From: Bigelowiella natans CCMP2755
Taxonomy: Eukaryota; Protista; Cercozoa
Direction: 5' to 3'
NCBI GenBank assembly: GCA_000320545.1
Contig: ADNK01001236.1
Location: 1-44,769, forward strand
DNA length: 44,769 nucleotides
In this document: positions 4,218-44,436 of the stretch, in pieces
Numbering within the stretch: the first letter of the stretch is position 1
How the letters are laid out: each line of letters begins with the position of its first letter
Translations under genes and position numbers: made by a program
Notes under the pieces: generated by a model
Seen by the model: only the letters and a program-made list of their open reading frames with translations
What the model was told of the DNA's origin: nothing
The model's database searches: none

Positions 4218-5138
4218 GGGGGGAGGAGAGAGAGGGGACGGGAATGATGGCCTTGATGGTAGATGCTTTCCTCCTCCTCCTATGTACAACGACGACGACG
4301 ACGACGACACCTGACCCTCCCTTCTCGAGCAAAAAGCTGATCTGCACTGGTTAAAAACCCTAATATTTATTCCCGAATGTTGTCCCACTTGTCCCGCGCC
4401 GGTGCGTCTGTCTCTGCGTCTGTTCTCTTCGTATTCAAAACCGCCCAGACTCTCTTCGGTAGTGCTTCCTCTGGACGACGTGGAACCACAGATATACGTG
4501 CGATGCAAGCGCTGCTCACAGCCGCTCTCGGCTCCGCGTATGCGCTCCACGCTCCCCAGTCGCGGAAAGACAGCGTTCCGCACGCGCAGGTCCCTCAGCT
4601 TCCGTTCAAAGCCATCAGGCTTCGGTGGGGCGGGCAGGTTCGGAGGTGATGCTACGGGAGCGGGCGGACTGGCTAGCAGTGAGAAGAGAGACGAGTTGGG
4701 CGGCGGAGGCGGGGGGGGGGGGGGGCAGCATCGCAACTCAGCCGATCAGGACAATGCCCGAGCTGCAAGCTGCCGTTGCCGCGGTGTGCATTGTGCCTGC
4801 TCACTATGGACAGCTCGACGCCCTATGCTATCACGGCTAGGAAAAGGTCGATGACTGCCGCTGCGAAGGAATCTGGCGGCGGAGGCGGGATCGGGGTTAT
4901 GGGAGGGGGGGGGGGGCGCGGGGGCCCAGGAGGCGGTGACAGCAAAGAGGGCGACTCGATTGATAGCAGCTCTAAACATCCGTTTGGCGAATGGTTCATC
5001 TGGTGCCAGAACTGCCGCCACGGCGGCCACGCCGCTCATGTGTACTCCTGGTTCGAGTCGCACGATGTTTGTCCGGGGGCGCACTGCACATGCAAGTGCC
5101 TCCATCTTGAACGCTCGATCATTCCGATGGCGACCTAG
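1..5138 (+). CDS. MIOS: GATOR2 complex subunit MIOS/Mio/Sea4 (multi-exon, 5' end outside the window)
   Basis: Spliced exons give DISEIIR-YRALRGYGLD (intron 84-209), LWSWL (exon from 466), AAALALFHLDV, LRMAAIALSGY, LKSPYLRAALAFL, LRDRVGFALRFL, GLLEGLIVTG..LLQSYIDRTGDLQSAAL and WISTYRALLDQWQLW-MQRARLDV. The C-terminal zinc/RING region reads CPSCKLPLPRCALCL...WFIWCQNCRHGGHAAHVYSWF..HDVCP..C.C.C, with the stop at 5138. Confidence 0.93.
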
Positions 5139-7387: not shown

Positions 7388-8831
7388 AACGGTTTGTGCT
7401 GATGTTCGGGGTGCTCCTGCTACTGGGGGAGGTACTTTTTGATAATGAGGGGAGGGGCTGCATTTTCTCCTCTTCTTTGCCGCTCTCAACGCGGTGCGGT
7501 ATCTTGCGCCGCGTGGCTCCTGACAGCATAGAGGAGGGTCTGATGCTCTTTCTGACCGTCATTAATGTTTCTAAAGCCGATGGTGGTGGCGATGATGATG
7601 ACGATGACGATGACGATGATGACGACGTTAGAGAGCAAGTTATGGAGGCTGGGCGGCGGATCCACCACCGGCCAAATGCTTCCTCCAACCGTCGCTGTGC
7701 TGTCATAGGGGAGGCGTCGGTGTGGGTCGGCATCAGAAGGGCCGGTGATAATGATGGGGGGGTGGAGGATGACAATCTGCCGAGATGCTCACGGCGAGGA
7801 AGACGGCGGTTAATTTGATGATGATGATAGTTTGGCTGCTGCTGCTGCTGCTCTGGTAGTAGCAATGACTCGATGGCATTGAGCCATATTTCCCGAGCTG
7901 ACCAGGTTTCCGAGGATAAGAGCAATAGAATATCAGCTGAAGGAAGCTCTGTTGAGGAAGAACCTCTCTTCTTCTTCTTTCTCCCATCCTCGCCTCCCCC
8001 CCCCCCCTCCTCCTTGTTGCTGCTCCTCCTGTTCCCGCTCTTCGTTGTACCATACGCCCTGTGGACGCTAGGCCAGGGCTCACGTAGCCGACCACCTTGA
8101 GAATGATCTTCCTGATTGTGCAGCAAGGCGAAGGTATACGGTGGCAGCAACGATGATGAGGATGACGCTGACGGTGCTGGCGTGGAGAGTGGGGAAGAGG
8201 ACGGTCTCGAATCGCCCAGCAGCAAGCCAGCTCGTAGTCCTCCTCCATCTTCAACTTCTTTCTGTCGGTCACAATATCTAACTACACGCCCCACTTTGCT
8301 TAGAGGGATCATGATGATTCCGTCCCCATCGTCGTCGTAATCACGCTCATCATTCGACCCCGTCGCAGACTTGTTCTCATGTGTTGCCTCTTTCTTCCTC
8401 CTCCGCGCCATCGTCGTCATCATCGGTTGTGGCGCAAGCACGACGAACCACCCCTCAGCATGGCAGGCGAGCGACGCTCTCACAGGGCGTCGGATTCTCT
8501 CCGAGCCCCTCCCATCTACACCATCGTCCAATAACTCCATTGTTAGATAGTGATTCTCCGCACAAATCCTTGAGCTCGCCAGTAGCCACCGGGAAGTGAA
8601 CGACCGCGAGGCGGTGCGTAGCACACGGGCGATATGGATTAGTGGCGAGGCTCCTGGTTGCTGTGCATCTGTACGCGTGGTGAGGCCGCCTTCTTTTCTA
8701 TGATGATAACCGACGCTATCAGCAGCAGAGAAACCACGGCCGTTGTTGCCGTGTTCATTCTGACCTGCCCTTGCGTGAACTGATGATGATGATGATGATG
8801 ATGATGATGCCTCCTTATCAATACACACACA

Positions 8832-8890
<59 letters not shown>

Positions 8891-15774: not shown

Positions 15775-16790
15775 GCAATGATTCTACGAGGTTTAAGCAG
15801 GTTGATGCCCTTCAACTTCGGCTCCAGTCATGGCATCCTCCGCTGGCAGAGCCAATCGGCGCTGGTGGTGCTTTTCCCTGGCAATGGGCCCTTCGAGGTT
15901 TGGTGTCGAATTTCGTTCCGACCGAATTTCTTTTATGATCATTGTCTTTGGTAAAAATCGGCATGTATTTTCGTCCCAAATTGCATCTGAGATTCAGAAG
16001 CGAGAACGATGATTTTTCTTGTCTGGGAAACAGGTTTTTGCATCATGCACTAGCTAGCAGCTAGCTAGTGTCTTGTCACACTTTGGAAGTGCAGTTTTTC
16101 ATCATTGTTCATTGTTCATTGTTCATTGCAAGATTGACCACGAGCGTTTCGCGTCTAATCAACATGTTGCTCACGCGTGGACGTTCGTGCGTGAAATTGA
16201 TCTGGAAATCGGTGGCTGCTAGCTGCGCTGCGGACGCTCTGCCGCAGCGCCCCAAACGTCAACCTGCATGATGTGCGACGCCATCACGCTGCATGGCGGT
16301 GGAAGTGCCTGAACGCACCCACAGCGCTGCGCAAAGTCTGCAACTTTCTTGAAACAAAAGCGATGCGATGAACGACCCCGCCACATCGTGACGACTGTGG
16401 CTGCACCCGCCGCCATGCCAGCATGCATGCACACGCATGTGCGTGCTGTCGTGATCTACACGCAGCTAGCAGAACTGCATGCACCTGCGTGCACTTGCAA
16501 GTTGTGGCCGATGCCATGCAAAACGCAAACGTCAGCGCCTCGTCAGCAAGTCGAAGAACGTGTGCATCAAACATCACATTGGAGTGTGCACACACTGGCC
16601 ATGCAAAGATTGCAGAGTGCATCGAATGATGACCAACACATGTAGCCGTGCAGGGGGGTGCTACTAACAACGAACACAATGCAAGATGAGATAAATGAAT
16701 GCCTCACCGATCTTCTGTGCAGAAATGCATCAGTAGGATTGTTGAAACTCACCATCTCTCACTCTGCTTTCCACAAGGGGTATGATTAAA

Positions 16791-19570
16791 TTAGCTAGTT
16801 GTTTTTCCTTCCTCTTTTACTTCCTCCTCAACCTTCTTTTCACTTTCATCGTCATTCTTCTTTTCACTTTCCACATTATCCGCTGTACTTTTCTTGTTAG
16901 CACTCGCATACTTGAAAAGGTATTCCGCCAGGAAATCCACTGGGTCTTCTGGCTGCACCTTACACACCTATTGAAATAGAGAACGAGTTTATGTACCTCT
17001 CTGATCTTTTCGAAGTTTAATCTAGCAAACCTGCAGCAGCCCTTTGGTTATTGGAGGGACAACATTCTTCATGAGGTACCTACGGTACCAAGCACAAAAA
17101 TTTATATGACAATTCGTCGTTGAGGCTCCTTTCCTTACTTTCTCAATGGCATTGAGTAGTTCTCGACAAGAGCTTGTTCCTCAAGAAGCAACTGAGTTGA
17201 GATATAAAATTTTACATACTAGTTTATTGAGCTGAACGTACGATTCCGTCCAAACCTGTTTCCTCCTTTCGGCATCCTCTTTCTCTGTCTCTTCTTTTTT
17301 CTTGACAACCTCTTCGGCTTTCTGTTTAGCATCAGCCTCCTGCAAGTAATGTTTAAACGTAATTAACGAAAAGGTTTGAAGTCTCATAACAACAATGAGG
17401 TGCTTAGGTTACAGTGCACACGTTAGCAGTACCGCTTTATTTTTTGTCTCTAAGATCTTGCTCTCACGCTTGGTCATTGCAGCGTAGGACTCTTCCTCGC
17501 CTGTGGAAAGATCCTTACAGATCGAGATACATCATACTCAGATGGTGTCCATATGTTCTCAGCATGTAATTTTCCACCTTGGGTTTGAACTTTTTGTCAA
17601 TGTATCTTGACACGGAGTCCGGTACATCGCTTTTCTCCTCGAATCCCAACTCCAGTATCGTGGAGCTCTTACGGAAGTATTCAAGAGGATCTGGAACAGA
17701 GTATGGATTACATTGAGAAACTTTGATTACAAAATAATGGCAGCACGTGCTTACTTTTTGTGACATCATCCTGAAGCTTCTCGAATTCTTCGGTCCGTGC
17801 CTTGAACCCCTCCTCGTCGTTATACGCAGCAATTACCTAAAGATTCCCCCACCATTTGTGAATCGACAACTTTTTTTTGAAATCAATGATGCGCCACCTT
17901 GTCCACAGGTATACTATGTATCCTTTTCTCGGCTTGTTCCACGCTGACATGCAAATCTATGATGACATTTGGGGTCTGCGGTTGGTCTACCACACCACTT
18001 CCGTTCTCATCTTTCGAGTCGTCTTTGGAGTCCGATTGAACAGTGAAAAGAGCCTGAAGAACACCATGATCTCTGTGAGAAAAATTCTCCAATTTCCTAA
18101 ACATGTCGAGTGTTATACCTCAGCTGCTTCATGGGTGGTCGGGAATCCATCTAGGACAAAGCCCTACATATTTTCCGAAGAAATTCAGCGTGGTGCTACC
18201 AGCGTATTCTATTATGAGTCACCTTATTCCTAAAGTGCGGAGTCGAGAGGGTTTTCTTAATGATATCCACCGACACTTCAGTGGGCACCATCGTTTCAGC
18301 GTCGGGGGCTTTAGCCTTTTTCGCAGCAGCACGTGCAGCCTCCACTTTTGCCTAGAAATTAACACTGTCAGATTTGCATGAATGAAAGAGGGTGGAAATG
18401 AATGCCACCTTGATTTCCTCGTCCTTCGACATTGCATCCTCGATGATTTCCTTCGTGTCCACGATCAGGATCTTATATTTTTCAGCCAACTTCTTTGCAA
18501 GGAATGTTTTCCCTGCACCAGGTCTTCCATGGATGAACACTTTGATAGTAGGATACAGCCCATTTACACTGGTGTATTCTTTGCAAACCCTACCCGCGTT
18601 TACAGCCAGACCATCTTTGCACTCCCACTTCATCCCCTTCGCCTCGAGGCCATTAACATACCCCAGCTCTATCGGTTTGTTGAACATCGCGGCCTCTAGA
18701 TTTCCCCATTTGCCGGTAAGCGCATCAATAGAATCCAGGGGCAATTGCTTGGTTTCTCCTGACCCCAGTATCTTCGATACTTCCTCTGCAATTTTCTTTG
18801 AATCTCCTTTTGAAGAATCGGTCGCGAGGATGTACGGACTCTCAGGAAATTCGCTTTGAATGTGGAATAATATTTTCGCAAGGTCCATTACGTGCAATGA
18901 GGGTAACACTCCCTTTGACTCGAGAAATTGGACAGGTTTGCAAAGAAATGCATCCCGGAAGTAAGAGAAGAGTCCTTCAGGACTTTTATCCTCTCCATTG
19001 CCATACAGAACTCCAGGAGCAACTATGCAAGGAGAAATCGTGCTTTCCTCGCTTGATTGGGCACAGGCTAAAATCTCATCTTCAAGAGTTTTGATAGCTT
19101 TATATTTGAAAGAGCACTCCCGTGTCTTGTAGTCGGTCTCCTTCAAAGAGCTACTGTTGGATTTATTCCACGATAGGAACGTTGAAACACCAACAACGTA
19201 GAGCGGAGTCTTGTTAACTTTAATTTCTAAAATAATGTCTTTTAGAACGGCAGCGATAATATGCGAGAGAAAAGGTGTAAATTACCTTTAACAGCACCCA
19301 AAAGTTCTTGTACATGTCCTCCATTACGCACAAGATCCACGACAATTAAAGATGCCTTGGAAAATATCCATATTAGTAAACATCGTGGGTGTTACGGATG
19401 ATTTCTTGCTTCACCTTGGCTACAGCACTTTTCAAGTCTAGGCCGGGTTTTGGTTTTAGAACGTTGTGCTTCAGGGCACGACATTGTTCCTCCACCGCAT
19501 TTCCGATGTAAGTATTGCAGTCCTGCCACCACGTAGAGTCAATTAGAACGTTGAACCCACCATCGCTCAT
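16791..19570 (-). CDS. AK7: Adenylate kinase 7 (ciliary; NAD-binding-like N-terminus, ADK domain, Dpy-30 domain)
   Basis: Motifs YVVGVSTFLSW..LKETDYKTR, CIVAPGVLYGNGE, LPSLHVMDLA and P-loop VFIHGRPGAGKT. C-terminal Dpy-30 motif [40 protein letters not shown]. Stop TAA at 16791-16793. Confidence 0.9.
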
Positions 19571-20453: not shown

Positions 20454-21103
20454 ATGCTGGATTTTCGGCGAGTGTGGGATTCGAAATATGAACGCAAGCG
20501 CTCGCATCATCACTCTTCCGACCCATTTTTCCGCATCGGTCCTGATGCTCTCAGGATAATCTGCCAGATGTCCCGTCCTCGACAATTATGCGCGTAAGTG
20601 CACATATTTGCATCCAACGATGAACATGAAACATCCCTCATCGTCCTAATTTACACACTGCTGCCTCCCTCGCAAATATCCAGCCTCATGGTGGCTTCAC
20701 GTGCCTTCAAGGGCATCGCCGACAATACCCTCCTGTGGACATCATTTATAACGCAAGATTTCCCACTGATAACAGAGCAGCAGTTAAAATGGAGACTGAG
20801 TGGAACGAGTGCGAAGGTCGTCAATTTCACAGAGAAACCGCACCTTCATCTTCTTGCACGTGAAAGAATATGAGATTATTGGCACATCGTTTTTAGGAAT
20901 TCTATCTAGAGATGGCGTACGATGAGACCGGAAAGGATCTCGACTCTATCGATGAACCTGGAACTGACGAGTGCATTCTAGCAGGAAAGGTGGACCGATG
21001 AGCATATGCTATGTGAATTTGTACGATGTAATAATGCTATGATGGCGAAGGAAATAGCGAATTTCATCCTTTAGAAAAATGTGAAAGTAACTATTCAGAA
21101 TCG

Positions 21104-21187
<84 letters not shown>

Positions 21188-21731
21188 CGAAAGAATGGTC
21201 TATTGCTACCCTGCGATATGGCTGATGCCGTCAAAACCGTCGTTGTCTTCAGCGTGTGTGAAAACGTCTTTATATTTTGCTTTCTTCTGGTAGTTATGGC
21301 AATCGTATCATCTTCACATCATTCCCGTTCTGGTTCCATTGTTAACGCTGACCATTACGGCCCTGATTGTATCTCGTTTGGAGCATCAAGAAGCACATTC
21401 TCGAGCTGTCCAACGAGGTGTTCAGGCGTCAAATGTGGAGGCTTTGGTAGGGGATATCGACCACACCTGGGTATGTATATTGTTTTCAAAATCAGCATTT
21501 TTTATGAGGTTCGAATGTGAACCCCCCCAATGGTTTTTATTCTCCTGGGCGTGTTCTTTGTGCCGGACCGTCGCAGAACACAAAATTGTCGTTTTAAGAT
21601 AAACGGTTTTTACGATTTCGACCCGTCAATTTGGCGTGGTTTTCAATGAGAGGGAGAGGGAGGGAGAGAAAGAGAATGAGAGAGAGAGAGAGAGAAAGAT
21701 CCAGTACTTGAATACGCTGAATAATTTGCCG

Positions 21732-24371: not shown

Positions 24372-24627
24372 TCGTATGAGACGGATGTAATCATATGATT
24401 AAATCTTTAAATTCAATCGTCATCCTAATGTAGCTATGCAAAGCAGCGGCTGCAGCGCTTATGTGTTGTATCTATTGGTTTCTGCTTTTATGTGTTTTAT
24501 GCATGCAAAGGCTTCCATATCATACATAGCATATATGAGACGGATGTAATGAAGAATTAAATTTTTTCAATGGTCATCCTGATGTAGCTGTGCAATGCAG
24601 CGGCTACAGCGCCAATGTTGCATCTAG
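24372..24627 (+). repeat. Diverged ~95-bp duplication; a third copy lies at ~32616-32672
   Basis: atgagacggatgtaat...ttcaat[c/g]gtcatcct[a/g]atgtagct[a/g]tgca..gcagcggct[g/a]cagcgc at ~24376 and ~24535. acatgagacggatgcaatgaa...ttcaatggtcatcctgatgtagccatgc at ~32617. Confidence 0.85.
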
Positions 24628-28890: not shown

Positions 28891-29215
28891 ATGGAGCAGA
28901 AAACGTTGCACCATGCTGGAGGGAAAGAGAAGGGGGATGGGGCGTTTCAAGGCAAGCAGCCGTTGGAACTGGAACATCTTATTGGATACACTTCGAAATA
29001 TCTGAATTCAGTGAAGTTCCATACGCACGAGAAGGACACTGTCGTCTACACCATCGGAATGGTTTTGGCCATAGCAGACCTTAAAAATCCACATAAGCAG
29101 AGGTACTACTGAACGAAATTGCTAAGTCCCCCGATGGGCCGTCCCTTTTTCTATCAAATTGTGCTAAACATTATCTTTCAGGTTTATTTGCGAGTATATC
29201 CTCTCATTCTCATTC

Positions 29216-29267
<52 letters not shown>

Positions 29268-30505
29268 TGTGTGTGTTTGTGTCTCGCATATATTAATTTC
29301 TCAGCATGTGAGACGTGCTGCTGTGTGTGCACTTTTTGTCCATGCACGTCTTCCTTAACCATCGTACTGTGCCACAGGTTTCTACGAGGACATGATTCAC
29401 CCGTGTGTTGCTTCGACATATCACCATGCGGAAAGATGGTGGCATCTGGACAAGAAGGCTCCAAGCGTTTCAAGGGTGATATGGCGCCGGTCGTGATATG
29501 GTCATGGGCCGGCAAAACTCTCGGCCAGTTCCCAGGACTCGTTGGTTCTGTCATTACAATTGCTTTCTCGCCAGACTCAAAGTACGTGGCCGCTAGCGGG
29601 GCCAACAAGATGCTCTACATATGGAGCCTTGAATCTGGGGATGTCGTCATTGCACAGAAGTCAGAAAAGGTTGTTTTTTCATCAACCACGCTTGTTTTGT
29701 TTACTCTGTTTTTCCTTACTTGGATCACAATCTTGGGTTCATCGTGGATTACATACAGAGCCGGAGAGGATTGGAGAGAAACGCCTAGCGATTTACCTAC
29801 TACTCCTCTCTTGTTGAAACCTTAAAAATTGTTCTAATTCTCCTCGCCATCTTTCTCAATCTTCACATTGTACAATTCAGATTGTAACCAGCATCGTATG
29901 GGGCCCGATGTCCCGAGGCCGGTCGCGCCGCAACCCAACCTACTCCCTAGTCACGACGCCATCACCCCTTTTTAGATATCACATCCTCGAGTTCGAGTCA
30001 AGGTCTATGCAGTACGTGCTTAAGACTTATCCCTGCCAGTTTCCAAGCAGAGGACTCTCGCGAACGTACATGTCGACGATAATGGATAATCTTGGTGAAA
30101 GCGCAATATCCGGCACAGAGGTAGTGTTCTACCTAGAAATAATAAAGGCAATGCTTTCTTTGCCCCTTCAGAGTAACCTACCCCACGTTTTCACTTAAAA
30201 TAAAGATGAAGCATCTTGTTCTTTGTTATAACTGTTCGTCTGTTCGTCGTCCTCCTCCCCCTCCTCCTTCCTCCTTCTTCTCTCTCGGTACTACAACTAC
30301 AAAGGCCGGAGATATGTTGGTTTTTAGCATGAGAAACTCTGTTTTTCGCACAAGAATTCCCATCTGTGCAAGCGGGATTAGCTCGGTGGTGAAGGCAAAG
30401 GACAACGTTGTCTACCTTGGAGGAGGGTACAGCTAGCATATTCAATTCAATACGTGCTTTGCCATCCGAATACTGTGTCGGTTGGCGCCTTATTGTACGT
30501 GATGT

Positions 30506-30544
<39 letters not shown>

Positions 30545-32199
30545 TGTATGTATGTGCATGTGAATACATGTTTATATGTGTCTACCACCCTCTCTCGGTT
30601 CCAATGATTTTGTGTTGGGAGTGTAGGAAATGTGTCTTTTCCCCGAGACCGAGTGTGCAACAAGATGTTTGATCGGCCATATTTATCTTTTCGATTAACA
30701 TAGGGACGGAAGCGTGAAGAAGTTGCGTGGGAGCGATCGAGACTGGCAGGTACTCGGTGAGACAAAGATACCAGGTAGAATCGTATCGTTATCTCTCAAC
30801 TCTGATGAGAGCTGCCTGGTTGCTGGGATGGCACACGGCTCCATGTGCATTCTCGACACGACGAGTCTCAAGTAATAATAATGCCACGAAAACAATGGTT
30901 TTCCCTCAAATATATTGGGATTGAGTGAGGAAAGCTCGAGGCACAAACGGGCGGGGCGGGGCGGGGAGGGAGGGATGGAGGAGGGGGAGCACGAAATGTC
31001 GAGTCTAGCTATCAAGATGTGTTTCGACATGTTCGCGTTGTCAGGTATAAAATAGCTGGTGAAAGTCACATGGCTGGGATCAACGACATAGCCTTTGGCA
31101 AGAAGGACTCCTCATATTGCTGCACGATATCCGAGGATAGGCTCCTTCGAGTCTGGAATCTAGGTACTACTGTTGCGGCAGCGGCAAGCTAGTACAATGA
31201 AAACACACGCGGTTGATAGTGAATTGTGTCGTACCGAAGTCATCGCACGGAATATTGGCGACATCGCCTTTTTATTCGTATCCCCTTGGCAAATACAAGC
31301 CTCAAAATAGTTCCGATCCTGCGTTTTATTCACGCGCGCGCACACACACGACACACGACACGCCACACTCCCCCTCCTCCCTTCGTCGCTGATTCCTTGG
31401 TGTGCCCCCCCCAACACAACAAGGCAACTATCACGTCCAGCGAACGATCAAAGGCCAATGCGCAGGGCGGCGGTGCCTGATAGATTCCGTGCGCGGTGAG
31501 ATAATATCTGGATGGTCGAATGGCGCTGTGCGTGCATTCTCGATTGATACAGGGCGTGAGAGCTGGTCGATCGCCAAAGCGCACAAAGGGGCCATTACGT
31601 GCCTCGATATTGGGCAGGGAAACCTCCTAACTGGGGGGGAGGACGGGTCTGTACGAATCTGGTCAACGCCATCGTGCCGATTGGTGACGCAATACCAGGC
31701 CCACCAGGGCGCTGTAGGGGAGGTGCTTGCGGACATCTCGCAGCCACACCTTGTCCATTCTTTTGGCCTCTCGGACCGTGCCATCTCGACGTACAACGCG
31801 AAGAAGGACCAGAAGATCATCGCGCACATGATCCAGAACGGCGGCTTCTGCTCCATGACGCAGCGGATTGACTCGGAGGAGGAACTCGTTACGGGGCTCT
31901 CGCACGGCTACATTCTCTTCTGGGACTGCGACGAGAAGAACCCGGTCGGGAAGGTCCTCGATAGCGGCCGCTCAGCAATCACGGCACTCGCGCTGTCTCC
32001 CGATGGAAAGTACCTGGCGCTCTCGGGCGCCGACTACCGGCTGCGCGTCTACGAGGTCAAGACTATGAAGCTCGTAGCACGGTGTGGCGGTCACGGAGGT
32101 CGTGTGAACAGATTGAGGTTCAGTCCCGATCAGCGGCAGATCGTCAGCGTTGGCGCTGATGCCGCTGTCTGCGTCTGGAACTTCTACCTAAGTCCTTAG
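28891..32199 (+). CDS. CFAP52/WDR16-like ciliary WD40-repeat protein
   Basis: N-terminal LELEHLIGY...VVYTIGMVLAIADLKNPHKQ-RFLRGHD, ASGQ, AHKGAITCL..LLTGGEDGSVRIW, and C-terminal GHGGRVNRLRFSPDQRQIVSVGADAAVCVWNF. Orthology versus paralogy to CFAP52 is not resolved. Confidence 0.8.
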
Positions 32200-32754
32200 A
32201 TAACTAGCCCAGTGGTCTGTGTAGTTAGTTGCGTTTGCGTGTGGCAGTAGTAGTGGAGCAGCAGCGGCAGCGGCAGAGTAGCCCTGCTGCGCGTAGCTCT
32301 CTAGCTTCGATGCCAGGCGCTTCTCCCCTTGGGTCAACAAACAATGCTGTGGATTGTTGCATTTCCATCCATTGTCATTTGCTCAATCATTGATTGAATC
32401 CCAGCGTCTGTTCTCTCACATGTGTCGATGCGATCGCGATGTTCATTGCATGCACTACGCATTGCTGTGTGGCGTGTTCACGATTTTGGGCATCATCATT
32501 GGTAGTCAATCTGTCAATCCCCCCCCCCCCGCAATGAGCCGATCGACGTAAATGCAGAATTTCATTCGGGAAAAATTTTGTGGAGCAACATGATCATTGT
32601 GGACACCAGCGCAACACATGAGACGGATGCAATGAAATGTTCAAATTTTTTCAATGGTCATCCTGATGTAGCCATGCTAGCATGCAATCCACCAGCGTCA
32701 TTTGATTGCACACAATGCACATGTTGCTCTGTGTCTCTGTTGTCACATGATGAT

Positions 32755-33108
32755 GCAGCAGACTGCCACACCACACCCCACATTTGATTTCCCATCTGCC
32801 GTCAGTAGGGGAATGACACAAAATTTTCATTTCAAAAATTCACCTACTGACGACCTACTGCTGAACTGAATTGTTAGAATGACATGGCAAAATTGCACGA
32901 GCATGACATGTCAAGTGTTCGACATTTGATTTCCCATCAGCAATCAGTAGCAAAATGTGCGAAAATGCGCAACATGAAAGCTTCACCTACTGACGACCTG
33001 CTGCTGAACTGAATTGCTATGATGACATGATGAAAATGTTCTACCCATGTGTTTTGTGAAAACAATCTTTGTTAAAAATGACATAGCAAAATCCACAGCA
33101 GAGCATCG
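32755..33108 (+). repeat. Left terminal inverted repeat (354 bp)
   Basis: Reverse complement of 37788-38141, compared line by line. Only 2 mismatches, both near the outer end (gactgcc/gactacc and ccacacc/ccatacc). Confidence 0.97.
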
Positions 33109-33147
33109 TTAAAAACACTGTAAATTTGTTCTCACCTAAAATAATAA

Positions 33148-33879
33148 ATGAGAATATTCAAATCAAAACAAGGAAAACCATTAGATGAATGGCTGACGGA
33201 AGAACAATTTAGATCTTTGAAAAACAAAAGATTTTTGCATGTAATATCATCAAACATGGACACACACAAAAGAAAACCTACTGAAGAACTTGTTGTTAAA
33301 TTTGGGCAAGGTAAGGGAACTCAGCCAGCATCAAGATTAAAAGATTACATATCATATTGTGGATACACTGATAGCAAAAGGCCCTGGATGGGTTGCAAAT
33401 TACATTATTTATTCATCACTGAAAAGAGTAAAAAAGTAGCAGCAATAAACTCTATGGTTCATAAATATGAACTCAAATTAAAACAGTATGCTAAAAAAAA
33501 CAACTTGTTAGTAGACAGAGGCGATGAAAGGATATTGATAAGATTAAGTAAATTAATTAGAATATTAGATTATAAACAATTTAAAAAACTCACAGACATT
33601 GAGTCAAAACCTACATACAATTTACGAAATAAAAAGCAGAAATACATCGTTGAAATATTAGACCATACAAACAAAGCAAAGAAAAATAACCATCAAAAAC
33701 CTACTACCTTCAAAGTGAAATACAGTGATGGTAGTGTAGAAGGAACAATTAGAAATGTATTACCTAATGATGTTAAATCAAAGAATTTTGATAAGTTATT
33801 TAGAGAATATTATGAAAAATCAAATGATAAAGACAATATTAAATTAGAAGATGAATATGTAAAACATCTTGGTATTTAA
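33148..33879 (+). CDS. Element ORF1, Lys-rich 243-aa protein with a C-terminal chromodomain-like segment
   Basis: Intronless AT-rich ORF starting 40 nt inside the left TIR. YIVEILDH...TTFKVKYSDG resembles the chromo consensus Y.VE.ILdh....ylVKW.G. Confidence 0.75.
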   Translation: MRIFKSKQGKPLDEWLTEEQFRSLKNKRFLHVISSNMDTHKRKPTEELVVKFGQGKGTQPASRLKDYISYCGYTDSKRPWMGCKLHYLFITEKSKKVAAINSMVHKYELKLKQYAKKNNLLVDRGDERILIRLSKLIRILDYKQFKKLTDIESKPTYNLRNKKQKYIVEILDHTNKAKKNNHQKPTTFKVKYSDGSVEGTIRNVLPNDVKSKNFDKLFREYYEKSNDKDNIKLEDEYVKHLGI

Positions 33880-34091
33880 TCATCTACTAAAATATCATAC
33901 ACAGCCCATTTTATATCTTTATTAAAATCAAATGGTTTTTTCATAATTTGTAATTTGATAAATAAATCACTATTTTCTGTTATCAGTAATTTATTAATTT
34001 TTTGTAATTTGTTTATCCTTTCTTCTAATTTTTTTAATCGTTTCTCTAATAAAGTGCCGAGTCTTGGAGCAGAGCCCGTCTGTATTCTGTT
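33876..34091 (-). CDS. Possible small coiled-coil ORF convergent with ORF1 (no ATG seen)
   Basis: Stop-free frame LLEKRLKKLEERINKLQKINKLLITENSDLFIKLQIMKKPFDFNKDIKWAVYDILVDD*. Its stop overlaps the ORF1 stop in TTAA at 33876-33879. Confidence 0.4.
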   Translation of the reverse strand, partial: NRIQTGSAPRLGTLLEKRLKKLEERINKLQKINKLLITENSDLFIKLQIMKKPFDFNKDIKWAVYDILVDD

Positions 34092-34182
34092 TTATTTGGA
34101 GGTCCCAGTCGTGATATTGATAAAAAAATAGTTGATAAATACGATATTCCTTTATTGGAATAAAAAAATCTATAGTAATGTA

Positions 34183-34338
34183 ATGTTAAAAAAATTAACC
34201 AAAAGACAGAAAGATTTATTAGCAGCTCATAGCAAGCATCATAGTAAAAAACATGTGGCATCTATGAGAATGAATCTAATGTTAGGTAAAACTTTCAAAG
34301 AAGCACACGAGATAGCAACTAAAAAGTATGGTAAGTAA
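34183..34338 (+). CDS. Small basic His/Lys-rich protein (51 aa) of viral type
   Basis: MLKKLTKRQKDLLAAHSKHHSKKHVASMRMNLMLGKTFKEAHEIATKKYGK. From memory it resembles small hypothetical proteins of marine viruses (unverified). Confidence 0.7.
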   Translation: MLKKLTKRQKDLLAAHSKHHSKKHVASMRMNLMLGKTFKEAHEIATKKYGK

Positions 34339-34360
34339 ATAATTTTTATTATTATTATTA

Positions 34361-36316
34361 ATGATAATAAATCTTATTAAATATTTATTAAAAACAATAG
34401 ATAAATTCATATGTAATAAAATTACAGGACAGCTTGAGAAGAAATACAATCACAAATCAGTGTGTAAAATTTACAAAAATTTGAATGAAGCAAACCATTA
34501 TAAGAAATTATGTGGCGGCGAAATTAACCCTATCAGTGATGATCTATTCTTACTTGTAAGAACCACTAAAAAACTGGTAAGAGAAACATTCAAACCTGTT
34601 AAAGATGTGATGTATGACCTTGTTTCTGTCAAGATGTTTAATTCATGTAACAAATGTTTATCTGTAGGATTACATCCTGTGGCTATTAAAACTGATTGTG
34701 TTATTGTAAGAGATAAAGTTGACAAGATTAAACCTTACTTTGATTTTAATAAAGACATTGGTGGTGTGAAATTGGAGGAAAAAACTAAGGTCATGGGTCA
34801 ATGCTTCATTCCTTTAGAAAATGAAGTGGTAGAACCTAAAACAATCAACATCAATGAGATTGACATTGTGAATGAATGGAACACAGAAGAAATTACAAAC
34901 GTATTTGATAAGTATGATGGAACTCTTGTGAATGTTTTACTACCTGGTAGTGGTAAGAGTTATTCAGTTAAAAAATGCAAAGGTAAAAAAATCTTGTTCG
35001 TAGCACCGTTTAATGAATTATGCCAAAATATTCGTGAGAGCGGACACGATGCTATTACTTATCACAGATTATTTAGCCTTGACATTCATAACAACGAATG
35101 TAAATACATAAGAAAATTTGATATTTCACCATGTGATGTCATGTGCTTTGATGAGGTTTGTGTGTATTCACTACATCAACTATCAAAAATTAAGTCATTT
35201 ATGGATAAGCATGTTGATAAAAAATTTATTGCTACTGGTGATTTAGCTCAATTGGATCCCATTGAAAACGAATGTCTGTTTAACAACATCAAAGACCTTG
35301 ATGTCAGAACAACTGAAGCCATGAATGATATGTTCCCTAATCAAATCACTCTTAAAATCTGTAAGAGAGTAAAAACAGACGAGGAAAGAAACACTCTTGC
35401 ACGATTAAAACAAGAAATATTTGATGTAAAAACTAAACCATTTGATGTGCTAAAAAAATATTTTAAAGTTGTTGAAAGTATGGATGAAGTAAAAACACTT
35501 AATAACATTACCTTCTACAACTTTAGATCCCGTTCAGTAGGCAAGTGCATCCACGGTCTACAAAAGAAACCGAGAAAAAAGGTTTATGTAGATGGTATTT
35601 GCTACTATGCTGGTATGGAGATTGTGTGTAAAAAATGTAATAAGAAACCAAAACTATGTGTGAACTATGCTTGTGAAATTGTTAAAGTAAGTAAAAAAGA
35701 ATTTGTGATACAGGATGTATGTGATGTGGAAGAAATAAGAATTCCTATGGAATTAATTAGTAAGCATTTTAGATCATCATATGCCTCTACCTGTCATAGT
35801 TTCCAAGGATTATCAGTAGATGGCCCTATCACCGCATTCGACACTGACACCTGTAGAATTAATCGCAAGTGGCTCTGGACTGCTATGACTCGTTCAACTG
35901 ACCTATCACAGATACAAATGTGTCAGCACAGCGATAAAGAATGCTACAGATTAAAAGAAAGTATGATTTCTCAAAAACTACGAATGAAAGTATCTTCACA
36001 TGAATCTCAGGACAAAAGAGCTGGTAGAACTTGGAAAGATAAAGAATATATTGATGAGGAATGGATAAAAAGAACTGTTAATGATCATCCACAATGTCCT
36101 GTGTGTAGATGTGGATTTACTGCTGACAATGTTTCTGTGGATAGAATTGATGATGATCTACCCCATCTCTGGAACAACTGTAGATTAACTTGTGTTGGGT
36201 GTAATTTATCTCGCAATAATCAGCAAACTTGTCCAGCATTTGGTGAATACACCCCTCGGGATGTTGATTTTGAAGATGAGGTGAGTGATGAGGACCTCAT
36301 CCATCTTGGGATTTGA
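34361..36316 (+). CDS. Degenerate family-B polymerase fragment fused to an SF1 (RecD/Pif1-like) helicase and a C-terminal HNH-type nuclease/zinc domain
   Basis: PolB motif B-like KFICNKITG and degenerate motif C AIKTDC. SF1 motifs: I PGSGKS, Ia ILFVAPFNEL, Ib AITYHRLF, II CFDEV, III ATGDLAQLDPI, V YASTCHSFQGLS, VI WLWTAMTR. C-terminal CPVC...SVDRIDDDLPHLWNNCRLTCVGCN. Confidence 0.9.
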   Translation: MIINLIKYLLKTIDKFICNKITGQLEKKYNHKSVCKIYKNLNEANHYKKLCGGEINPISDDLFLLVRTTKKLVRETFKPVKDVMYDLVSVKMFNSCNKCLSVGLHPVAIKTDCVIVRDKVDKIKPYFDFNKDIGGVKLEEKTKVMGQCFIPLENEVVEPKTININEIDIVNEWNTEEITNVFDKYDGTLVNVLLPGSGKSYSVKKCKGKKILFVAPFNELCQNIRESGHDAITYHRLFSLDIHNNECKYIRKFDISPCDVMCFDEVCVYSLHQLSKIKSFMDKHVDKKFIATGDLAQLDPIENECLFNNIKDLDVRTTEAMNDMFPNQITLKICKRVKTDEERNTLARLKQEIFDVKTKPFDVLKKYFKVVESMDEVKTLNNITFYNFRSRSVGKCIHGLQKKPRKKVYVDGICYYAGMEIVCKKCNKKPKLCVNYACEIVKVSKKEFVIQDVCDVEEIRIPMELISKHFRSSYASTCHSFQGLSVDGPITAFDTDTCRINRKWLWTAMTRSTDLSQIQMCQHSDKECYRLKESMISQKLRMKVSSHESQDKRAGRTWKDKEYIDEEWIKRTVNDHPQCPVCRCGFTADNVSVDRIDDDLPHLWNNCRLTCVGCNLSRNNQQTCPAFGEYTPRDVDFEDEVSDEDLIHLGI

Positions 36317-36351
36317 AGAAGTTGAGAATGGAAATGCGAAATTCAATTTTG

Positions 36352-36395
36352 CGATTTTTTAATGATGATAAATTGTTATCATCATTAAAAAATCG
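36352..36395. terminator. Perfect 20-bp hairpin (4-nt loop) after the helicase stop
   Basis: cgattttttaatgatgataa-attg-ttatcatcattaaaaaatcg, beginning 36 nt after the TGA at 36316. Confidence 0.7.
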
Positions 36396-36608
36396 GTACA
36401 GCTACGGATGTAACCATTGTTTTTGGGAGAAACGGTACAAGTCTCCTCACATTAGATCTACATGTACATGTCGGTTAAGCGATTTGGCCTTCTCTTCTCC
36501 AATTCGCGACATCAATTTTCGGTTCTTCATGTGGAAATAGTAATGCGTTTTCCCTTTGGCGACGCTTGCATGCTGAACTTGATGATCATTGAACCGTCTA
36601 TCTCAGTC

Positions 36609-37532
36609 ATGGTTCCCGCCTTCGCACTTTTGCTACTCTGGGCATCCACAGCTTTAGCGTCCTGTTATTCCGTCCGAAATGACGCGTCGTGGGTTAAGGT
36701 TCGCACGATCAATTCCAGCGCGGCTGACTGTCCATATTTCACCGACAACCTTGACGGGAGTCAAGCTGTTGGTGCTGTCACAGGCGGCGGCGAAGTCATC
36801 CAAACTTACGACGGCAGCAGCATTGTGGGGTTCAAGTTTGAAACGGGTAACGGAGCGAATTTCCTCATCGCAAGAAGGTTTCAAGTCATCGGGGAAACCT
36901 ACGCTGGTTCACCCCAACGAGACGTTTATTGCAGCAGCTATTCCAACAGTTCCTACACAGCAGAGTGGTACAACCGTGGGAGCAACAACCCAAGCGACCC
37001 TTTGATATTTCTCCGAGGCTACAGCACCACCACCACTTCAAAACAAAATTGTTTCTACTGCGAATATGAAGCTAGTCAAGGCGACCCATTCCAAACGATG
37101 TGGCAGGCCAACGGCGGTATTGACATCTACGTGACCTCCAACCAAGTCTTCCCGACCAGTTCTCCAACAGCCATGCCAACCGCAAGCCCCGCAACCGCAA
37201 GCCCCGCAACCACGAGCCCGACCGCAAGCCCCGCAACCGCAAGCCCCGCAACCGCAAGCCCCGCAACCGCAAGCCCCGCAACCACGAGCCCCGCAACCGC
37301 AAGCCCCGCAACCACGAGCCCGACCTCAAGCCCGACCTCTAGCCCGGATGATGACAATGCCGAAAGCATTGTGGGTCCTGTCGTCGGTGCGGTCTGCGGA
37401 TTCTTGGTGTTGGCAGCTGTTGTTGGATACTGCTACTACCAGCGAGGCAAGCCCAGCGTCGACCAAAATGCGAATGACCAAAACTTCGCTGGAGTAGTCA
37501 ATGACCAAAAAGGGGGAAACAACGCATTGTAG
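36609..37532 (+). CDS. Intronless type I membrane protein (signal peptide, ectodomain, (TASPA)n stalk, TM, short tail) carried inside the element
   Basis: Signal peptide MVPAFALLLLWASTALA from ATG 36609. Ectodomain contains WVKVR...AEWYNRG..DPLIFL. Pro/Thr/Ser/Ala stalk, then TM IVGPVVGAVCGFLVLAAVVGYCYY. Clearly more GC-rich than the other element ORFs. Confidence 0.85.
   Translation: MVPAFALLLLWASTALASCYSVRNDASWVKVRTINSSAADCPYFTDNLDGSQAVGAVTGGGEVIQTYDGSSIVGFKFETGNGANFLIARRFQVIGETYAGSPQRDVYCSSYSNSSYTAEWYNRGSNNPSDPLIFLRGYSTTTTSKQNCFYCEYEASQGDPFQTMWQANGGIDIYVTSNQVFPTSSPTAMPTASPATASPATTSPTASPATASPATASPATASPATTSPATASPATTSPTSSPTSSPDDDNAESIVGPVVGAVCGFLVLAAVVGYCYYQRGKPSVDQNANDQNFAGVVNDQKGGNNAL
37179..37346 (+). 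repeat. Coding 15-bp tandem repeat (accgcaagccccgca) encoding TASPA/TTSPA
   Basis: About 11 directly visible units, some with variant or 12-bp forms. Confidence 0.9.
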
Positions 37533-37787
37533 GCCTAAAAATGGATTGCTGCATCGCTGGGGGATGGCAAGTTGTTTGCTGTTGGCGGGGCTAACGATGA
37601 AGATGTTCCTTGCACATCGGGGAAACATCTTCGCATTGCGATGCAGCCTGCTTTGATTTGAACATTTAATCGTTGTGTCATTTTTTATTTACTTTTTTTT
37701 TTTACAATTGCACTAAAATCTCAAATTAATATTTTGTTAAAAACTTTGTTAAAAAAAAATAATATTACTTTTTAAGAGTAAATGATG

Positions 37788-38141
37788 CGATGCTCTGCTG
37801 TGGATTTTGCTATGTCATTTTTAACAAAGATTGTTTTCACAAAACACATGGGTAGAACATTTTCATCATGTCATCATAGCAATTCAGTTCAGCAGCAGGT
37901 CGTCAGTAGGTGAAGCTTTCATGTTGCGCATTTTCGCACATTTTGCTACTGATTGCTGATGGGAAATCAAATGTCGAACACTTGACATGTCATGCTCGTG
38001 CAATTTTGCCATGTCATTCTAACAATTCAGTTCAGCAGTAGGTCGTCAGTAGGTGAATTTTTGAAATGAAAATTTTGTGTCATTCCCCTACTGACGGCAG
38101 ATGGGAAATCAAATGTGGGGTATGGTGTGGTAGTCTGCTGC
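37788..38141 (-). repeat. Right terminal inverted repeat (354 bp)
   Basis: Runs cgatgctctgctgtggat...tatggtgtggtagtctgctgc and is the reverse complement of 32755-33108. Confidence 0.97.
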
Positions 38142-38675
38142 GAGGCATGCGAATAAGCGCGTACACGAGTAAATCGCAGCACTGCTGATCGAGCACGCCC
38201 GCACGAGCTGTTTCCGATATCGCCGCCGATCGACGTGTCGTATGAACAATGAACCTGCGGTGTTGATTGACCGTACGTACCTGTCTAGCTGTGCGGCGCA
38301 GCACAAACACGAACGAAAGACTGGCGCATGCGTATCGGTGGAATGTCGTGCATCGCGTGCTCCCAGTACGTAGCGTGCGCACCATCAATGAGGCTGACGA
38401 CAAGTGTGCTATGTGCAACAGCAAGCACATTCCTGTACTATTTCACGGCGATGACGACGTCTACAGTCATGGCATTGTATTTCACGACAGCCTGCTGCGC
38501 ACATAGCTAGCATAGATAGTGATAATGCTTAAAGAAGCACGTATAAACGCACAAATAATTCGCTGTTTTCTGCGCAACATGCATCGCATGCTCATATGCC
38601 TGTGCCCTGCTCGGGGATACTGAAGGGGAGACATTATCAATCTATTAAATTCGATAGGAAATATCTTTGCGACAT

Positions 38676-38973
38676 TCACAAATTTTCATTGTACACTACT
38701 GCAAGGGCTACAAGAAATATACCCACAACAGCAAAGAGTAAAACCCCGACAACTAATGTCGTGCGGCCGGTGTCCTCTGATATATGCCGCCCATCATCTT
38801 TGCTAGTGGTGTCAGCGGGCTGTGCAGGCTCTGATGTCGTTTGCTTACCGCTACTAGCTCCATTCGCCTTCTCTACCTCGCTGCTGTTCTTCGGTTCCGT
38901 ACTACTTCTCCTCTCTTCCACCAAATGGGTCTTTCCTTTGGTGTCGGCGGGGGAACTCTTTTCCCTACAATAT

Positions 38974-40985: not shown

Positions 40986-41062
<77 letters not shown>

Positions 41063-42297
41063 TGTGTGTGCGTGTGTATCTGTGTATGTATGTAACGCGG
41101 AAAGGAGTAGTACTTGTCTGCTATTCTGCAAGCAGCGTTTACTCCCAAATAAGATTGAAAATTTTTCGGGTTTTTCGAACTCGGTTTCATCCAATATGTA
41201 GGCAGCATCTGAGCAAGAATCCATAGAATATGATTGTAAAGAGAAGGAAGAAGGTCTTTCTGCAGCTATTCCGTCACACTTATTACACGGAAAACTGCAA
41301 ACACAGATGTGTTGCGTTTGAACCCGTCCTTGTTCTCTCTCTCTCTCTCTCTCTCTCGCCTCTCTCTCTTTACTAGCTATCAACCTCCACTGAGAGGCGA
41401 TGATAGCTGTGAAAGGCGTCGACTTCGTTCATACAGAGAAGAAACGGTGCGAGGAGAATATTCTGTCCTGCGCTCGGAGAAATGAAATACGAATTCAATA
41501 ACAGCACCAAATCAGAACACAGATTGGGTGCAAACTTAGGTAATACAAAATACCTTGCGTGTACTTAAAATTTGATTTATGTGAAACAGCGTGTAGAATC
41601 CTGGTCATCTGTACGCGAAGCCAGCAGGGGAAAACAAGTAGAAATCACAATCATAATTCCTTTTGTGATCAAGGAAAGAAATTCACGAAAGAGGGACCTT
41701 TCTCTTCTGCGATTCCAAATCAAAAATTTCAAGTTTCGGAAATGTTCTAAACCTTGAGGGATATATGGAGGGGGGAAATTATTTCAATTTCTATGCCAAG
41801 TTTGGAAATGTCAAAGCTCAGCGGGAATGGTGGGGGGGGCGGGGCGATGAGCTTCTTACACATCATGTCTTATAACTTTGCCTTGCACTTTATTCTCCCC
41901 CTTTTTAAGCTGCTCTTTATACTTCTCCAAAGCGGTTCGTGCTCCCCCCTGCATATTCATAGTCTCTGAGAGTCATCGCCTAATATCTTCTTATTGGCAA
42001 GGGCGCTTACCTTTTCTTCGTAGACAACTCCAAGCATTAGCTTCCATAAATTCCCCCTCAAGTTTGTTTTTCCTTCCTTGTTTCTATTTGGCAAGCGCAA
42101 GCCCAGTTTTGTGAGCGCGCCATCAACACGAACAACCTGAGAAAGAAATGTTTGTATTCCCTGCAAAGCTGTAGGGCGAAAGAAAAGGGGGAGGGGAGGT
42201 TGGGTAGGCGGACCGTCTTTAAGTTTTCTAGTTTGGCCGTGAAATCTTCCTCATTTTCTGCCTCGAGCAGTTTCTTGAACTCCTGTTCCACTGACAT
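39412..42297 (-). CDS. TBC-domain GTPase-activating protein, BUB2/Cdc16-like
   Basis: Spliced exons LRGNLWKLMLGV, FRTFPKLE, MTRILHAVSHKSNFKYTQG-QNILLAPFLLCMNEVDAFHSY, ILRVVDPNLHKAL and VLIYVAQLMSLREK match TBC motifs (D..RTF, Y.QG.N). Probable end ...LDEVLAQQKEHTP*. Confidence 0.75.
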
Positions 42298-44436
42298 GCT
42301 CTGGAGGGGGGTGGGCGCGCCGGCACCCGCGTGTCCGGCTGTTGTTAGTTAGTTAGTTAGTTAGTTATTCTTTTCGCGCCCTTGACTTCCCAGCTATGTT
42401 GTTACACCGAAGTGATTTTCATAGTGGATGTTGTCTCATAACGGACATTGCGAAAGTCAAAACTTGCATAGCGAAACATAGCAAAATTTGTGACTTATAG
42501 GACTAATAAACTTTTTTCTTTTGATTTTTAGGTTTGAGCCTTTTTTTTTTTTTTTTTTTAGGTTTGGGGCCTTTATTCTGGTAAATTTAATGATAGGAAT
42601 GTAAGGTGTGCAATTTAAAAGGAAAATTGTTGTTTAATGTTGTCGTGAAGGTTTATCAGGGAGATGGTTGTCGTCTGATTATCTGGAGTAATATGAGATT
42701 TCACAGTAGGTTTTACATAGAGGTTTTCTTGCCAGAATCAGCTCTTGTTGAAGAGTTGCGTCCGGTTGGAAAACCCGACAGCAGATTCATCAATTTCCGC
42801 GAACGGGCAAGCCAGGAATCACCTACATATTCTGACCAAAATGCACGTGGAAAACCTTTCGAGACAACAACAGTAACGGCTCACTTGTGGTTAGTCCTGT
42901 TTCTCCACATAGATCTAGATCTACGATGATCAATTATCTGTTTGTGTGAGGCGGTGGATGTCGTTGTCACACATGGAATTTTCATCGCATTTCTGGAAAT
43001 GTTATTTAGGTAATTTTCCCACCCAAAATTAGACGAATGGAGCTAGTAGCGGAAAACGGCCCGCTGACACAGACACCACTAGCAAAAACGATGGGCGGCA
43101 GGCATCGGGGGACACCGGCCGCGCGACATCAGTTGCAGGGATTTCACGTGCTAGCGTGTGGGGATGTTTCTCGTAGGCCTTGCATCAGTTTGAAATGAAA
43201 GTTTGTGAATGTCCACTGGATGTCCTGATGTCGCAAAGACAATTGCGCAAAGATGGGACAAGCCTTCGAGCTCTCCCGCCTCAGAGTCAAAACAAAAGAG
43301 AGTTCAAGTCCTTCAAACACTGCCGCAGCTTGGGGGATTCAGCCAGTCAGGACCCACCACAGCAGCCAACATGCCCATTTTTCAATCATGTTGGTTGCAA
43401 GCACCAGTTGGCACTCGCTGAAGTTTCAGTTCGAGGCACTAGCTGTGATCGTGCTTTCTGGCAATGAGTGTCACACAACACTTTCTAGCTTTGGAAATGT
43501 GGTCGATGATCAAGTTTTTTTCTTTGTTTCGTGGCGCACATGATCATGTGTGCGAGCATGCAACGTTGTGCAGCAGCCACCGAACACAATGTCTAGATGT
43601 GCTTGCTAGCTAGCTAGCTAGCTACCCAACTTGAGCGCGTCGTTTGCGCACTCTGGCACTTTTGCCAATTGACTGTTGCATGTCTAGATCTGCGCACTTT
43701 TCGCAAAGCATGCAACATCATGTTGGACGTCGCCATCGCAAGAAATGTGAGGAGAATGTGTCTGCGAACATCATCATCAACTAATTCAGTGGGAGGAAAT
43801 GCACGCGCGCATCGCATATGCATGTACGCACCATGTCACATGATTCGTTTGTGCATGTGTTGTGCCGACCGTGGGCTTGCTCACACGATGTGCACATTTA
43901 GACACAGAGTGGCACACAGAATAGAGCGAACCAGTGCCACTGGTCAAGTAGTTTGCCAGCACGCAGCTTCGGCAGATCGTTTGTGCATTAACTGTGGTCA
44001 AATCTTTGCTGGTACGGTTTGTTTAATGTAGCTCATTAAAAGCTCATCAACGATAACACATAAAGACCATAGATAACCATGTACTTGCTGCATGCTTATG
44101 AGTAAATCGTAGACATGATGAGTGTCGAGCAGCTTCTGCGATATAATTCATCTGCCTGGATGGATTGTATTTGATCTGTCGAGTGCTTAATAGCATTCGT
44201 GCAAATTGAAGCAGCCAGTACAGCTATGCTTTAGCATCTCCTGGATGTTCCGGTATGTAGTTTTTCAAGGTTGCTCGGCAGTGCTTTGTAGCGCGCAGGA
44301 CATGATCTTGCTTTACCTCTTGCGCCCTGCGTGACGAAGTTGTCCAGCACAATATTAGTAAGCCGGGAACGTTAATATAAGTTATTGTGAATTGGTAGAC
44401 CAACGGAAACAAGAGCGGTGTTCCGCAGCAAGCACG

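Follow-up and report, generated by a model that had tools for sequence, protein, structure and literature searches.

The element described here occupies positions 32755-38141 of the window, that is, of the whole 44,769-nt stretch of Bigelowiella natans DNA analysed (contig ADNK01001236.1). It spans 5.4 kb and consists of a pair of 354-nt inverted repeats enclosing 4.7 kb; its flanks contain host genes and microsatellites, and the sequence around it (GC 0.45-0.55) is of eukaryotic type, with many dinucleotide microsatellites. We characterized the element, which is integrated in nuclear DNA of B. natans, as an internally deleted, rearranged remnant of a polinton-like virus (PLV) from the PLV-Bnat (‘transpoviron-like’) family. 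A first-pass annotation had proposed that this DNA was rewritten by a directional change of TpA to CpA or TpG, a proposal that the genes of the element bear out.

The AT-rich part of the element interior (33109-36316, GC 0.31) holds ORF243, a short open reading frame (ORF), ORF68, and the ORF of a 651-aa helicase; the GC-richer part holds an ORF for a Ser/Thr/Pro-rich membrane protein with a signal peptide. The nearest relatives of the helicase and of ORF243 were JGI Bigna1 gene models with 74-96% identity on at least six scaffolds; thus, the PLV-Bnat element family is multi-copy in B. natans. Also, a transcript contig, L005, is 100% identical to window positions 33867-35277 (1411 nt). Given the Bigna1 relatives and the identical transcript, the window is B. 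natans nuclear DNA, and the window copy, or one identical to it, is transcribed. In its 3′ part (L005:1410-1701) the transcript joins three short downstream pieces of window region 35278-36295, skipping 234, 231 and 256 nt. Host splicing of the helicase was rejected as a cause, since the three joins lack GT-AG boundaries; the skips may come from a deleted sister copy or may be an assembly or template-switch artefact.

The helicase ORF (34361-36316, plus strand) encodes a 5′-truncated Tlr1-like superfamily-1 helicase with Pfam domains AAA_30 and UvrD_C_2. An exhaustive protein search found 1458 homologs, mostly of ~1300 aa, and the window ORF aligns to their C-terminal half only, corresponding to residues ~630-1300 of full-length homologs (P0001, P0015 and others); the N-terminal polymerase-like half has no match anywhere in the window. 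The Walker A motif GSGKS is invariant in six aligned helicase sequences. A C-terminal CxxC...CxxC motif (C579, C582, C611, C614), kept in 94-100% of homologs, is the one termed HNH in PMC5499653; helicase residues 541-651 gave no Pfam match to an HNH domain.

ORF243 (33148..33879, plus strand) is a conserved gene of the element family, with homologs in the related loci L001-L003 and L006 and in Bigna1 models P0010-P0013; a metagenome scan with ORF243 returned one short locus, L006. A 301-aa protein 45% identical to ORF243, P0014, ends in a C-terminal chromodomain (PF00385, E=2.4e-10), a domain that the window ORF243 does not have; judging by this domain, the ORF243 protein family may bind chromatin. 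ORF68 (34132-34338), for which only a weak PHROG match was seen, lies within a segment, 34056..34383, whose orientation is opposite to that in L001, L002 and L003, where its counterpart sits flipped directly after the ORF243 homolog; thus, the element has been rearranged. L001 is a 9.6-kb metagenomic contig whose positions 1-2565 abound in microsatellite tracts, (TA)n, (TG)n and (GA)n, much like the window, which suggests an integrated copy in a related alga.

The membrane-protein ORF (36462..37532, plus strand, GC 0.54, likely start at 36570) encodes a single-pass protein. This gene is GC-rich, host-like and mucin-like, yet it lies inside an AT-rich viral remnant; as a 96% identical paralog, P0165, exists on another scaffold, the gene appears to travel with the element. 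Just 3′ of the helicase stop codon there is a hairpin (36352..36395), a perfect 20-bp inverted repeat of terminator-like form. Convincing Pfam matches were found for none of ORF68, ORF243 and the membrane-protein ORF, and PHROGs matches for neither the helicase nor ORF243. The four sizeable ORFs of the element gave no family match to a capsid protein or an A32-like packaging ATPase; as the element has no capsid or packaging genes, we consider it a remnant, not a complete virus genome. In a 10.7-kb AT-rich metagenomic contig, L004, a 61%-identical helicase homolog adjoins a Pox_A32 packaging ATPase. No target-site duplication is evident at the element boundaries, the flanks reading ...CACATGATGAT before the left repeat and GAGGCATGCG... 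after the right one.

The B. natans elements first named transpovirons are polinton-like viruses, and their Tlr1-like helicase combines an inactivated polymerase at the N terminus with an HNH domain at the C terminus (Krupovic et al. 2016, PMC5499653). The window element resembles these PLV-Bnat viruses in its Tlr1-like superfamily-1 helicase, whose Cys-rich C-terminal part may be nuclease-like, as well as in being AT-rich, integrated in B. natans, multi-copy and partly transcribed. It differs from them in its length of only 5.4 kb and in being without capsid genes, packaging genes and the polymerase-like helicase half; in addition, it has the flipped segment and the GC-rich membrane-protein gene.

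Transitions at TpA in the element genes

We consider it highly probable that this PLV-Bnat remnant underwent A:T→G:C hypermutation restricted to TpA, with adenine deamination as the presumable cause. Evidence for this comes from paralogs of its genes. Mutation spectra were reconstructed from amino-acid differences and window codons (a single nucleotide change with its neighbours) and cover amino-acid-changing sites only. A site-based test, independent of path choice, took all A/T positions whose change A→G or T→C would alter the residue and evaluated them by Fisher’s test.

Over 302 aligned helicase residues we saw 57 differences between the window and paralog P0001; among the 56 explained by a single nucleotide change, 55 are transitions. 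In 47 of these an A/T in the window corresponds to a G/C in the paralog, and 37 of the 47 stand at TpA in the window DNA. By the site-based test, 37 of 86 TpA sites had changed in P0001 versus 10 of 306 other A/T sites (p=3e-19). For the ORF243 paralogs the respective fractions were 13/71 versus 1/156 (P0010), 33/71 versus 0/156 (P0011), 24/71 versus 5/156 (P0012) and 22/56 versus 2/136 (P0013); 100 of the 129 amino-acid differences in these four correspond to A/T→G/C transitions. Over the five paralogs, 18-46% of the detectable TpA sites had changed versus 0-3.3% of other A/T sites (p from 1e-6 to 3e-20). No TpA bias was seen in P0007-P0009, which are relatives known from transcripts or metagenomes, and L001, with an observed-to-expected ratio (O/E) of TpA of 1.01, bears no sign of hypermutation.

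Signs of the same change were visible in the window copy itself. A reverse comparison counted how often its TpG/CpA sites match TpA in a less mutated relative: for these sites versus its other G/C sites, the counts were 10/57 versus 1/70 with P0002, and 16/80 versus 5/100 with P0018. When the window copy was aligned codon by codon with the virus contig L004, A→G changes were found at 20.4% of TpA sites and at 12.4% of sites outside TpA (p=0.007), and changes running the other way had no context effect. As read from these alignments, PLV-Bnat copies have gained A:T→G:C transitions almost only at 5′-TpA-3′, with a load varying by copy; a TpA→TpG change on one strand appears as TpA→CpA on the other. 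The window copy is lightly to moderately mutated; copies on other scaffolds have lost up to ~45% of the detectable TpA sites and almost all Tyr codons. Both P0001 and P0012, which are located on the same scaffold, are heavily mutated, and this fits a regional process.

The direction put forward by the first-pass annotation, TpA→CpA/TpG, the reverse of fungal repeat-induced point mutation (RIP), agrees with what we found in outgroups and distant homologs: these carry Tyr, Ile or Leu at sites occupied by Cys/His, Val/Thr/Met or Ser/Pro in the B. natans copies. Moreover, single Tyr columns of the alignments have His in one paralog and Cys in another. Such alternation indicates independent hits, made after the copies had separated; as His and Cys can both arise in one step only from TAT/TAC, it also indicates that Tyr is ancestral. 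The comparisons support TA as the ancestral state and CA/TG as the derived one in the element genes, and in unmutated homologous helicases the key sites are occupied by Tyr rather than Cys.

The composition of the helicase had been noted at the start for Cys codons at places where Tyr would fit better, and the homologs bear this out. The ORF has 33 Cys codons (26 TGT, 7 TGC); Cys makes up 5.2% of its residues, more than in any of 148 distant homologs (mean 2.9%, maximum 4.3%), and Tyr 3.1%, near the family minimum, versus a family mean of 5.2%. Among the 17 columns with Tyr as the consensus residue (in at least 50% of sequences), the window protein has Cys or His in five; Ile, the consensus residue of 30 columns, is replaced in it by Val, Thr or Met in 12 of them. 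Neither fraction is matched by any of the 148 homologs. In the segment CKKCNKKPKLCVNYAC, Cys 426, 433 and 438 are Tyr in paralog P0018 (Y426C, Y433C, Y438C); at column 438, 137 of 146 distant homologs have Tyr. In SPCDVMCFDEVCVY, 64% of homologs carry Tyr at column 258, and P0001 carries it in place of C267. Altogether, about 30 amino-acid changes in the window helicase would be derived ones of the TpA→TpG/CpA type.

In the window copy of ORF243, the putative derived TpA changes are Y31H, Y40H, I50V, Y71C and Y182H (and K14E), 5-6 in total. Four-way parsimony at the DNA level assigned eight A→G or T→C changes specifically to the window copy; six of the eight are at ancestral TpA, with ~30% expected.

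By the genetic code, a TpA→TpG/CpA change converts no sense codon to TAA, TAG or TGA; it removes TAA and TAG stops, and the sole change that yields a stop is TAA→TGA. Since no stops arise from sense codons, heavily mutated copies (P0001, P0010-P0013) stay long ORFs and are still called as genes. For the same reason the helicase ORF of the window is open despite its decay.

The inverted repeats and the dinucleotide background

The left terminal inverted repeat (32755..33108, 354 bp, GC 0.415) was the lead exhibit of the first-pass annotation. Its low TpA count was right: 10 versus 29.7 expected (O/E 0.34), with 39 CpA versus 27 and 37 TpG versus 17 (CpA+TpG O/E 1.74). As polarised evidence, however, the repeat turned out to be the weakest part of the element. 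It is built of two diverged direct units with a period of 142-143 bp (32780-32824 and 32922-32966; 32834-32895 and 32977-33038). The right terminal inverted repeat (37788..38141, 354 bp) is 99% complementary to the left arm and has 12 TpA versus 30 expected. The arms mismatch at two positions, 32765 (G in the left arm, A in the right) and 32774 (C in the left, T in the right), facing right-arm positions 38131 and 38122; in context, as had been pointed out, these are TG and CA in the left arm versus TA and TA in the right one. Since both arms are poor in TpA and almost the same in sequence, the depletion must be older than the template they last shared; it was inherited, not acquired in place. 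On the simplest reading, the low TpA content of the repeats would be a footprint of the same hypermutation, left before the arms were last copied from one template.

We scanned the window for similar composition in 354-bp windows, with thresholds taken from a published genome analysis (TpA ratio ≤0.43, CpA+TpG ratio ≥1.52). Four regions were flagged: the left repeat with 530 bp of its left flank, the right repeat, and the regions 15976-16879 and 43126-44029. The last two are non-coding, of ~900 bp each, with TpA O/E of 0.33-0.34 and CpA+TpG of 1.62-1.68; CATG, TGCA and GCATGC motifs are abundant in them. They could be old bleached foreign DNA or could have native intergenic composition. The left flank (32226..32754), which lies between the stop codon of a WD40-repeat gene ending at 32199 and the repeat, has a TpA O/E of 0.38 and a CpA+TpG O/E of 1.73, unlike the right flank (38142-38696; 0.93 and 1.34, respectively). 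Within it, positions 32618-32672 are a 55-bp dispersed repeat that recurs at 24535-24588 and 24376-24439; apart from this repeat and one 57-bp match, no similarity was seen between the TpA-poor stretches and the element or among the stretches themselves. The initial statement that host DNA is unaffected thus holds for exons and for most of the window, which are ordinary, but not for three non-coding host stretches with the signature of the repeat.

A number of observations weigh against the hypermutation reading or limit its reach. The three host stretches just described have no detectable relation to the element; with the signature present there, the composition of the repeat could be ordinary for some B. 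natans non-coding DNA. In the element interior the TpA O/E is 0.77, no lower than in host flanks (0.71); in related elements elsewhere it is 0.9-1.0. The two arm mismatches alone prove little, as two mismatches of this kind would occur by chance with probability ~0.05 (an estimate from dinucleotide counts under a transition-dominated spectrum). Aligned with its sole outgroup, L001 (~75-80% identical), the repeat shows five TpA→TpG/CpA changes versus one in reverse, among 50 differences, and other kinds of change predominate when the repeat is compared three ways with its internal units; these alignments are too diverged to be decisive. The paralog spectra, derived as they are from amino-acid differences, are blind to synonymous and non-coding sites. 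Finally, TpA is its own reverse complement, so in these data a damaged A is indistinguishable from a damaged T.

These observations leave room for an account in which the TpA poverty of the repeats is a native or functional property, or is ordinary non-coding composition, so that only the coding interior was hypermutated. We find this account unlikely, though worth keeping in mind. The stretches 15976-16879, 32226-32754 and 43126-44029 match or exceed the signature of the repeat; nevertheless, a published genome scan ties windows of this kind to foreign sequences. The polarisation of the repeat is weak against both L001 and the internal units, yet in the inner ~190 bp of the repeat, homologous to L001:2566-2770, the TpA O/E is 0.35 in the window versus 0.74 in L001. 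Similarly, arms that are 99% identical could not have gained the depletion in place after insertion; still, both of their mismatches are of the TA versus TG/CA type, and the process demonstrably acted on adjacent genes of the same element family.

One could also speculate in the opposite direction, that the process reaches beyond viral genes. The repeats, the left flank, 15976-16879 and 43126-44029 would then all be old targets, and a noticeable share of non-coding DNA would be bleached foreign DNA; there would be transcribed ‘zombie’ ORFs, and the element would have been copied after it was hit. This extension appears to us still more doubtful. If true, ‘zombie’ ORFs with Tyr→Cys/His replacements could feed new genes and would not be simple wreckage; the near-identical TpA-depleted arms would mean that the element was still copied after the hits and that the defence is survivable.

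Two further features of the window were recorded. Compound dinucleotide microsatellites are numerous (21098-21190, 41000-41096, 8821-8890 and 29211-29285), with forms such as (CA)n(TA)n, (CT)n(TA)n(TG)n, (CA)n(GA)n and (CT)n(GT)n; tracts combining CA, TA and TG are in principle derivable from TA tracts by a TpA process, the other combinations are not, and we draw no inference from them. Homopolymer runs of C or G, 12-17 nt long, recur in its non-coding parts (32520-32531, 4706-4725, 2180-2192 and others).

Other explanations and a candidate mechanism

Three further alternatives were weighed. The element could be AT-rich viral DNA drifting to host GC content by mutation bias or GC-biased gene conversion, with no dinucleotide-specific process involved. 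The helicase GC content, 0.33 in the window versus 0.22 in L004, would fit such drift, as would the count of A→G plus T→C changes, 189 versus 64 in reverse, with an excess outside TpA too. What makes this explanation very improbable is that in the five paralogs TpA changed 10- to 100-fold more than other A/T sites, and that the background spectrum of the host is AT-biased according to published mutation-accumulation data.

We give as little credence to A-to-I editing of RNA by an ADAR-like enzyme, be it present in gene models and transcripts or fixed through an RNA intermediate. The 5′-U preference of ADAR fits TpA, and the element is transcribed; however, the derived states stand in the genomic DNA of the window, and transcript L005 equals the DNA over its 1411 nt. 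The Bigna1 ‘aug1’ models are, if we read their names correctly, ab initio Augustus predictions on the assembly. Also, there is no reverse transcriptase among the element ORFs, and what the published experiment recorded were new mutations of DNA, most numerous in a region that is transcriptionally silent. We exclude RNA editing as the origin of the states seen in the window.

Least probable of all is reverse polarity, in which RIP-like or methyl-cytosine-like C→T changes at CpA/TpG made TA in the ‘clean’ copies: the two arm mismatches are not polarisable with two arms only, and G:C→A:T is the commoner background change in B. natans, but Tyr/Ile/Leu and a TpA O/E of 0.9-1.0 are what we see in distant homologs and free-virus relatives, and the His/Cys alternation at Tyr columns is reached in one step only from TAT/TAC.

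Under TpA-restricted hypermutation, adenine would be deaminated to hypoxanthine in the T-A context on either DNA strand. A deaminase of the ADAT2/TadA type is a candidate enzyme because the natural target of TadA/ADAT2, A34 of tRNA, is also preceded by U (U33) and so stands in a T/U-A context. Some TadA/ADAT2 relatives, amphioxus BjADAT2 and laboratory adenine base editors, act on DNA; the link of such enzymes to the window element is drawn from context preference. The deaminase could be directed to foreign DNA by some signal and would act as a genome defence. The first-pass annotation had called the process repeat-targeted, and for this we found no support: the published main target is a single-copy viral insertion, and targeting is probably not by repetition as such.

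Relation to known processes

Whether such a process had been described in this lineage was left open by the first-pass annotation. It has been: in mutation-accumulation lines of B. natans, Mettrop et al. (bioRxiv 10.64898/2026.01.13.699255) found that 230 of 231 new mutations in viral regions were transitions of the A→G or T→C type, all of them at TpA. The mutated regions were insertions of a giant virus (186 kb) and of a virophage (25 kb), the main target being single-copy, and the rates, in some lines only, were ~1000x background (about 1e-7 to 1e-6 per site per generation). The authors proposed an ADAT2-like adenine deaminase, with the ADAT2 homolog Bn78255 as a candidate, and discussed the 5′-U preference of ADAR; ‘transpoviron’ genes entered their analysis only in a dinucleotide statistic pooled with virophage and giant-virus genes, in which TpA depletion was not clear. 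In the literature searched, there was no other report of TpA hypermutation.

The window locus shares with that process the organism, the A→G/T→C type of change, the strict TpA context and a target in integrated viral DNA, as well as the predicted long-term footprint, a loss of TpA with a gain of CpA/TpG. It differs in that new mutations were seen there, and here we saw a historical footprint, polarised copy by copy, in a PLV family. As TpA hypermutation is already known for B. natans, the window locus is a further historical example of it, in a different element class.

Among better-known systems, fungal RIP is likewise a context-dependent transition hypermutation of unwanted nuclear DNA, leaves a dinucleotide footprint and is read as genome defence. 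However, RIP changes C→T, mostly CpA→TpA, and thus makes TpA and stop codons, whereas the B. natans process destroys TpA and makes no stops; furthermore, RIP needs duplication and a sexual cycle, in contrast to the single-copy main target published for B. natans. The restriction of viruses and mobile elements by APOBEC3 and ADAR in animals resembles it in clustered one-way transitions with a neighbour preference. The difference is that APOBEC3 deaminates cytosine, and in the element the adenine (or the paired thymine) of nuclear DNA is affected; ADAR acts on RNA, where a heritable change needs reverse transcription, and the element is a DNA element.

Rewriting of foreign DNA from TpA to CpA/TpG would be a rare eukaryotic mutational defence, opposite to RIP and APOBEC-type editing. 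The locus adds independent evolutionary evidence for it: a third element class, unequal loads among copies and independent hits in Tyr codons. It also carries a warning, as a low TpA content by itself does not tell targets apart from some non-coding DNA of B. natans that looks ordinary. The mutated copies stay open and can still be transcribed.

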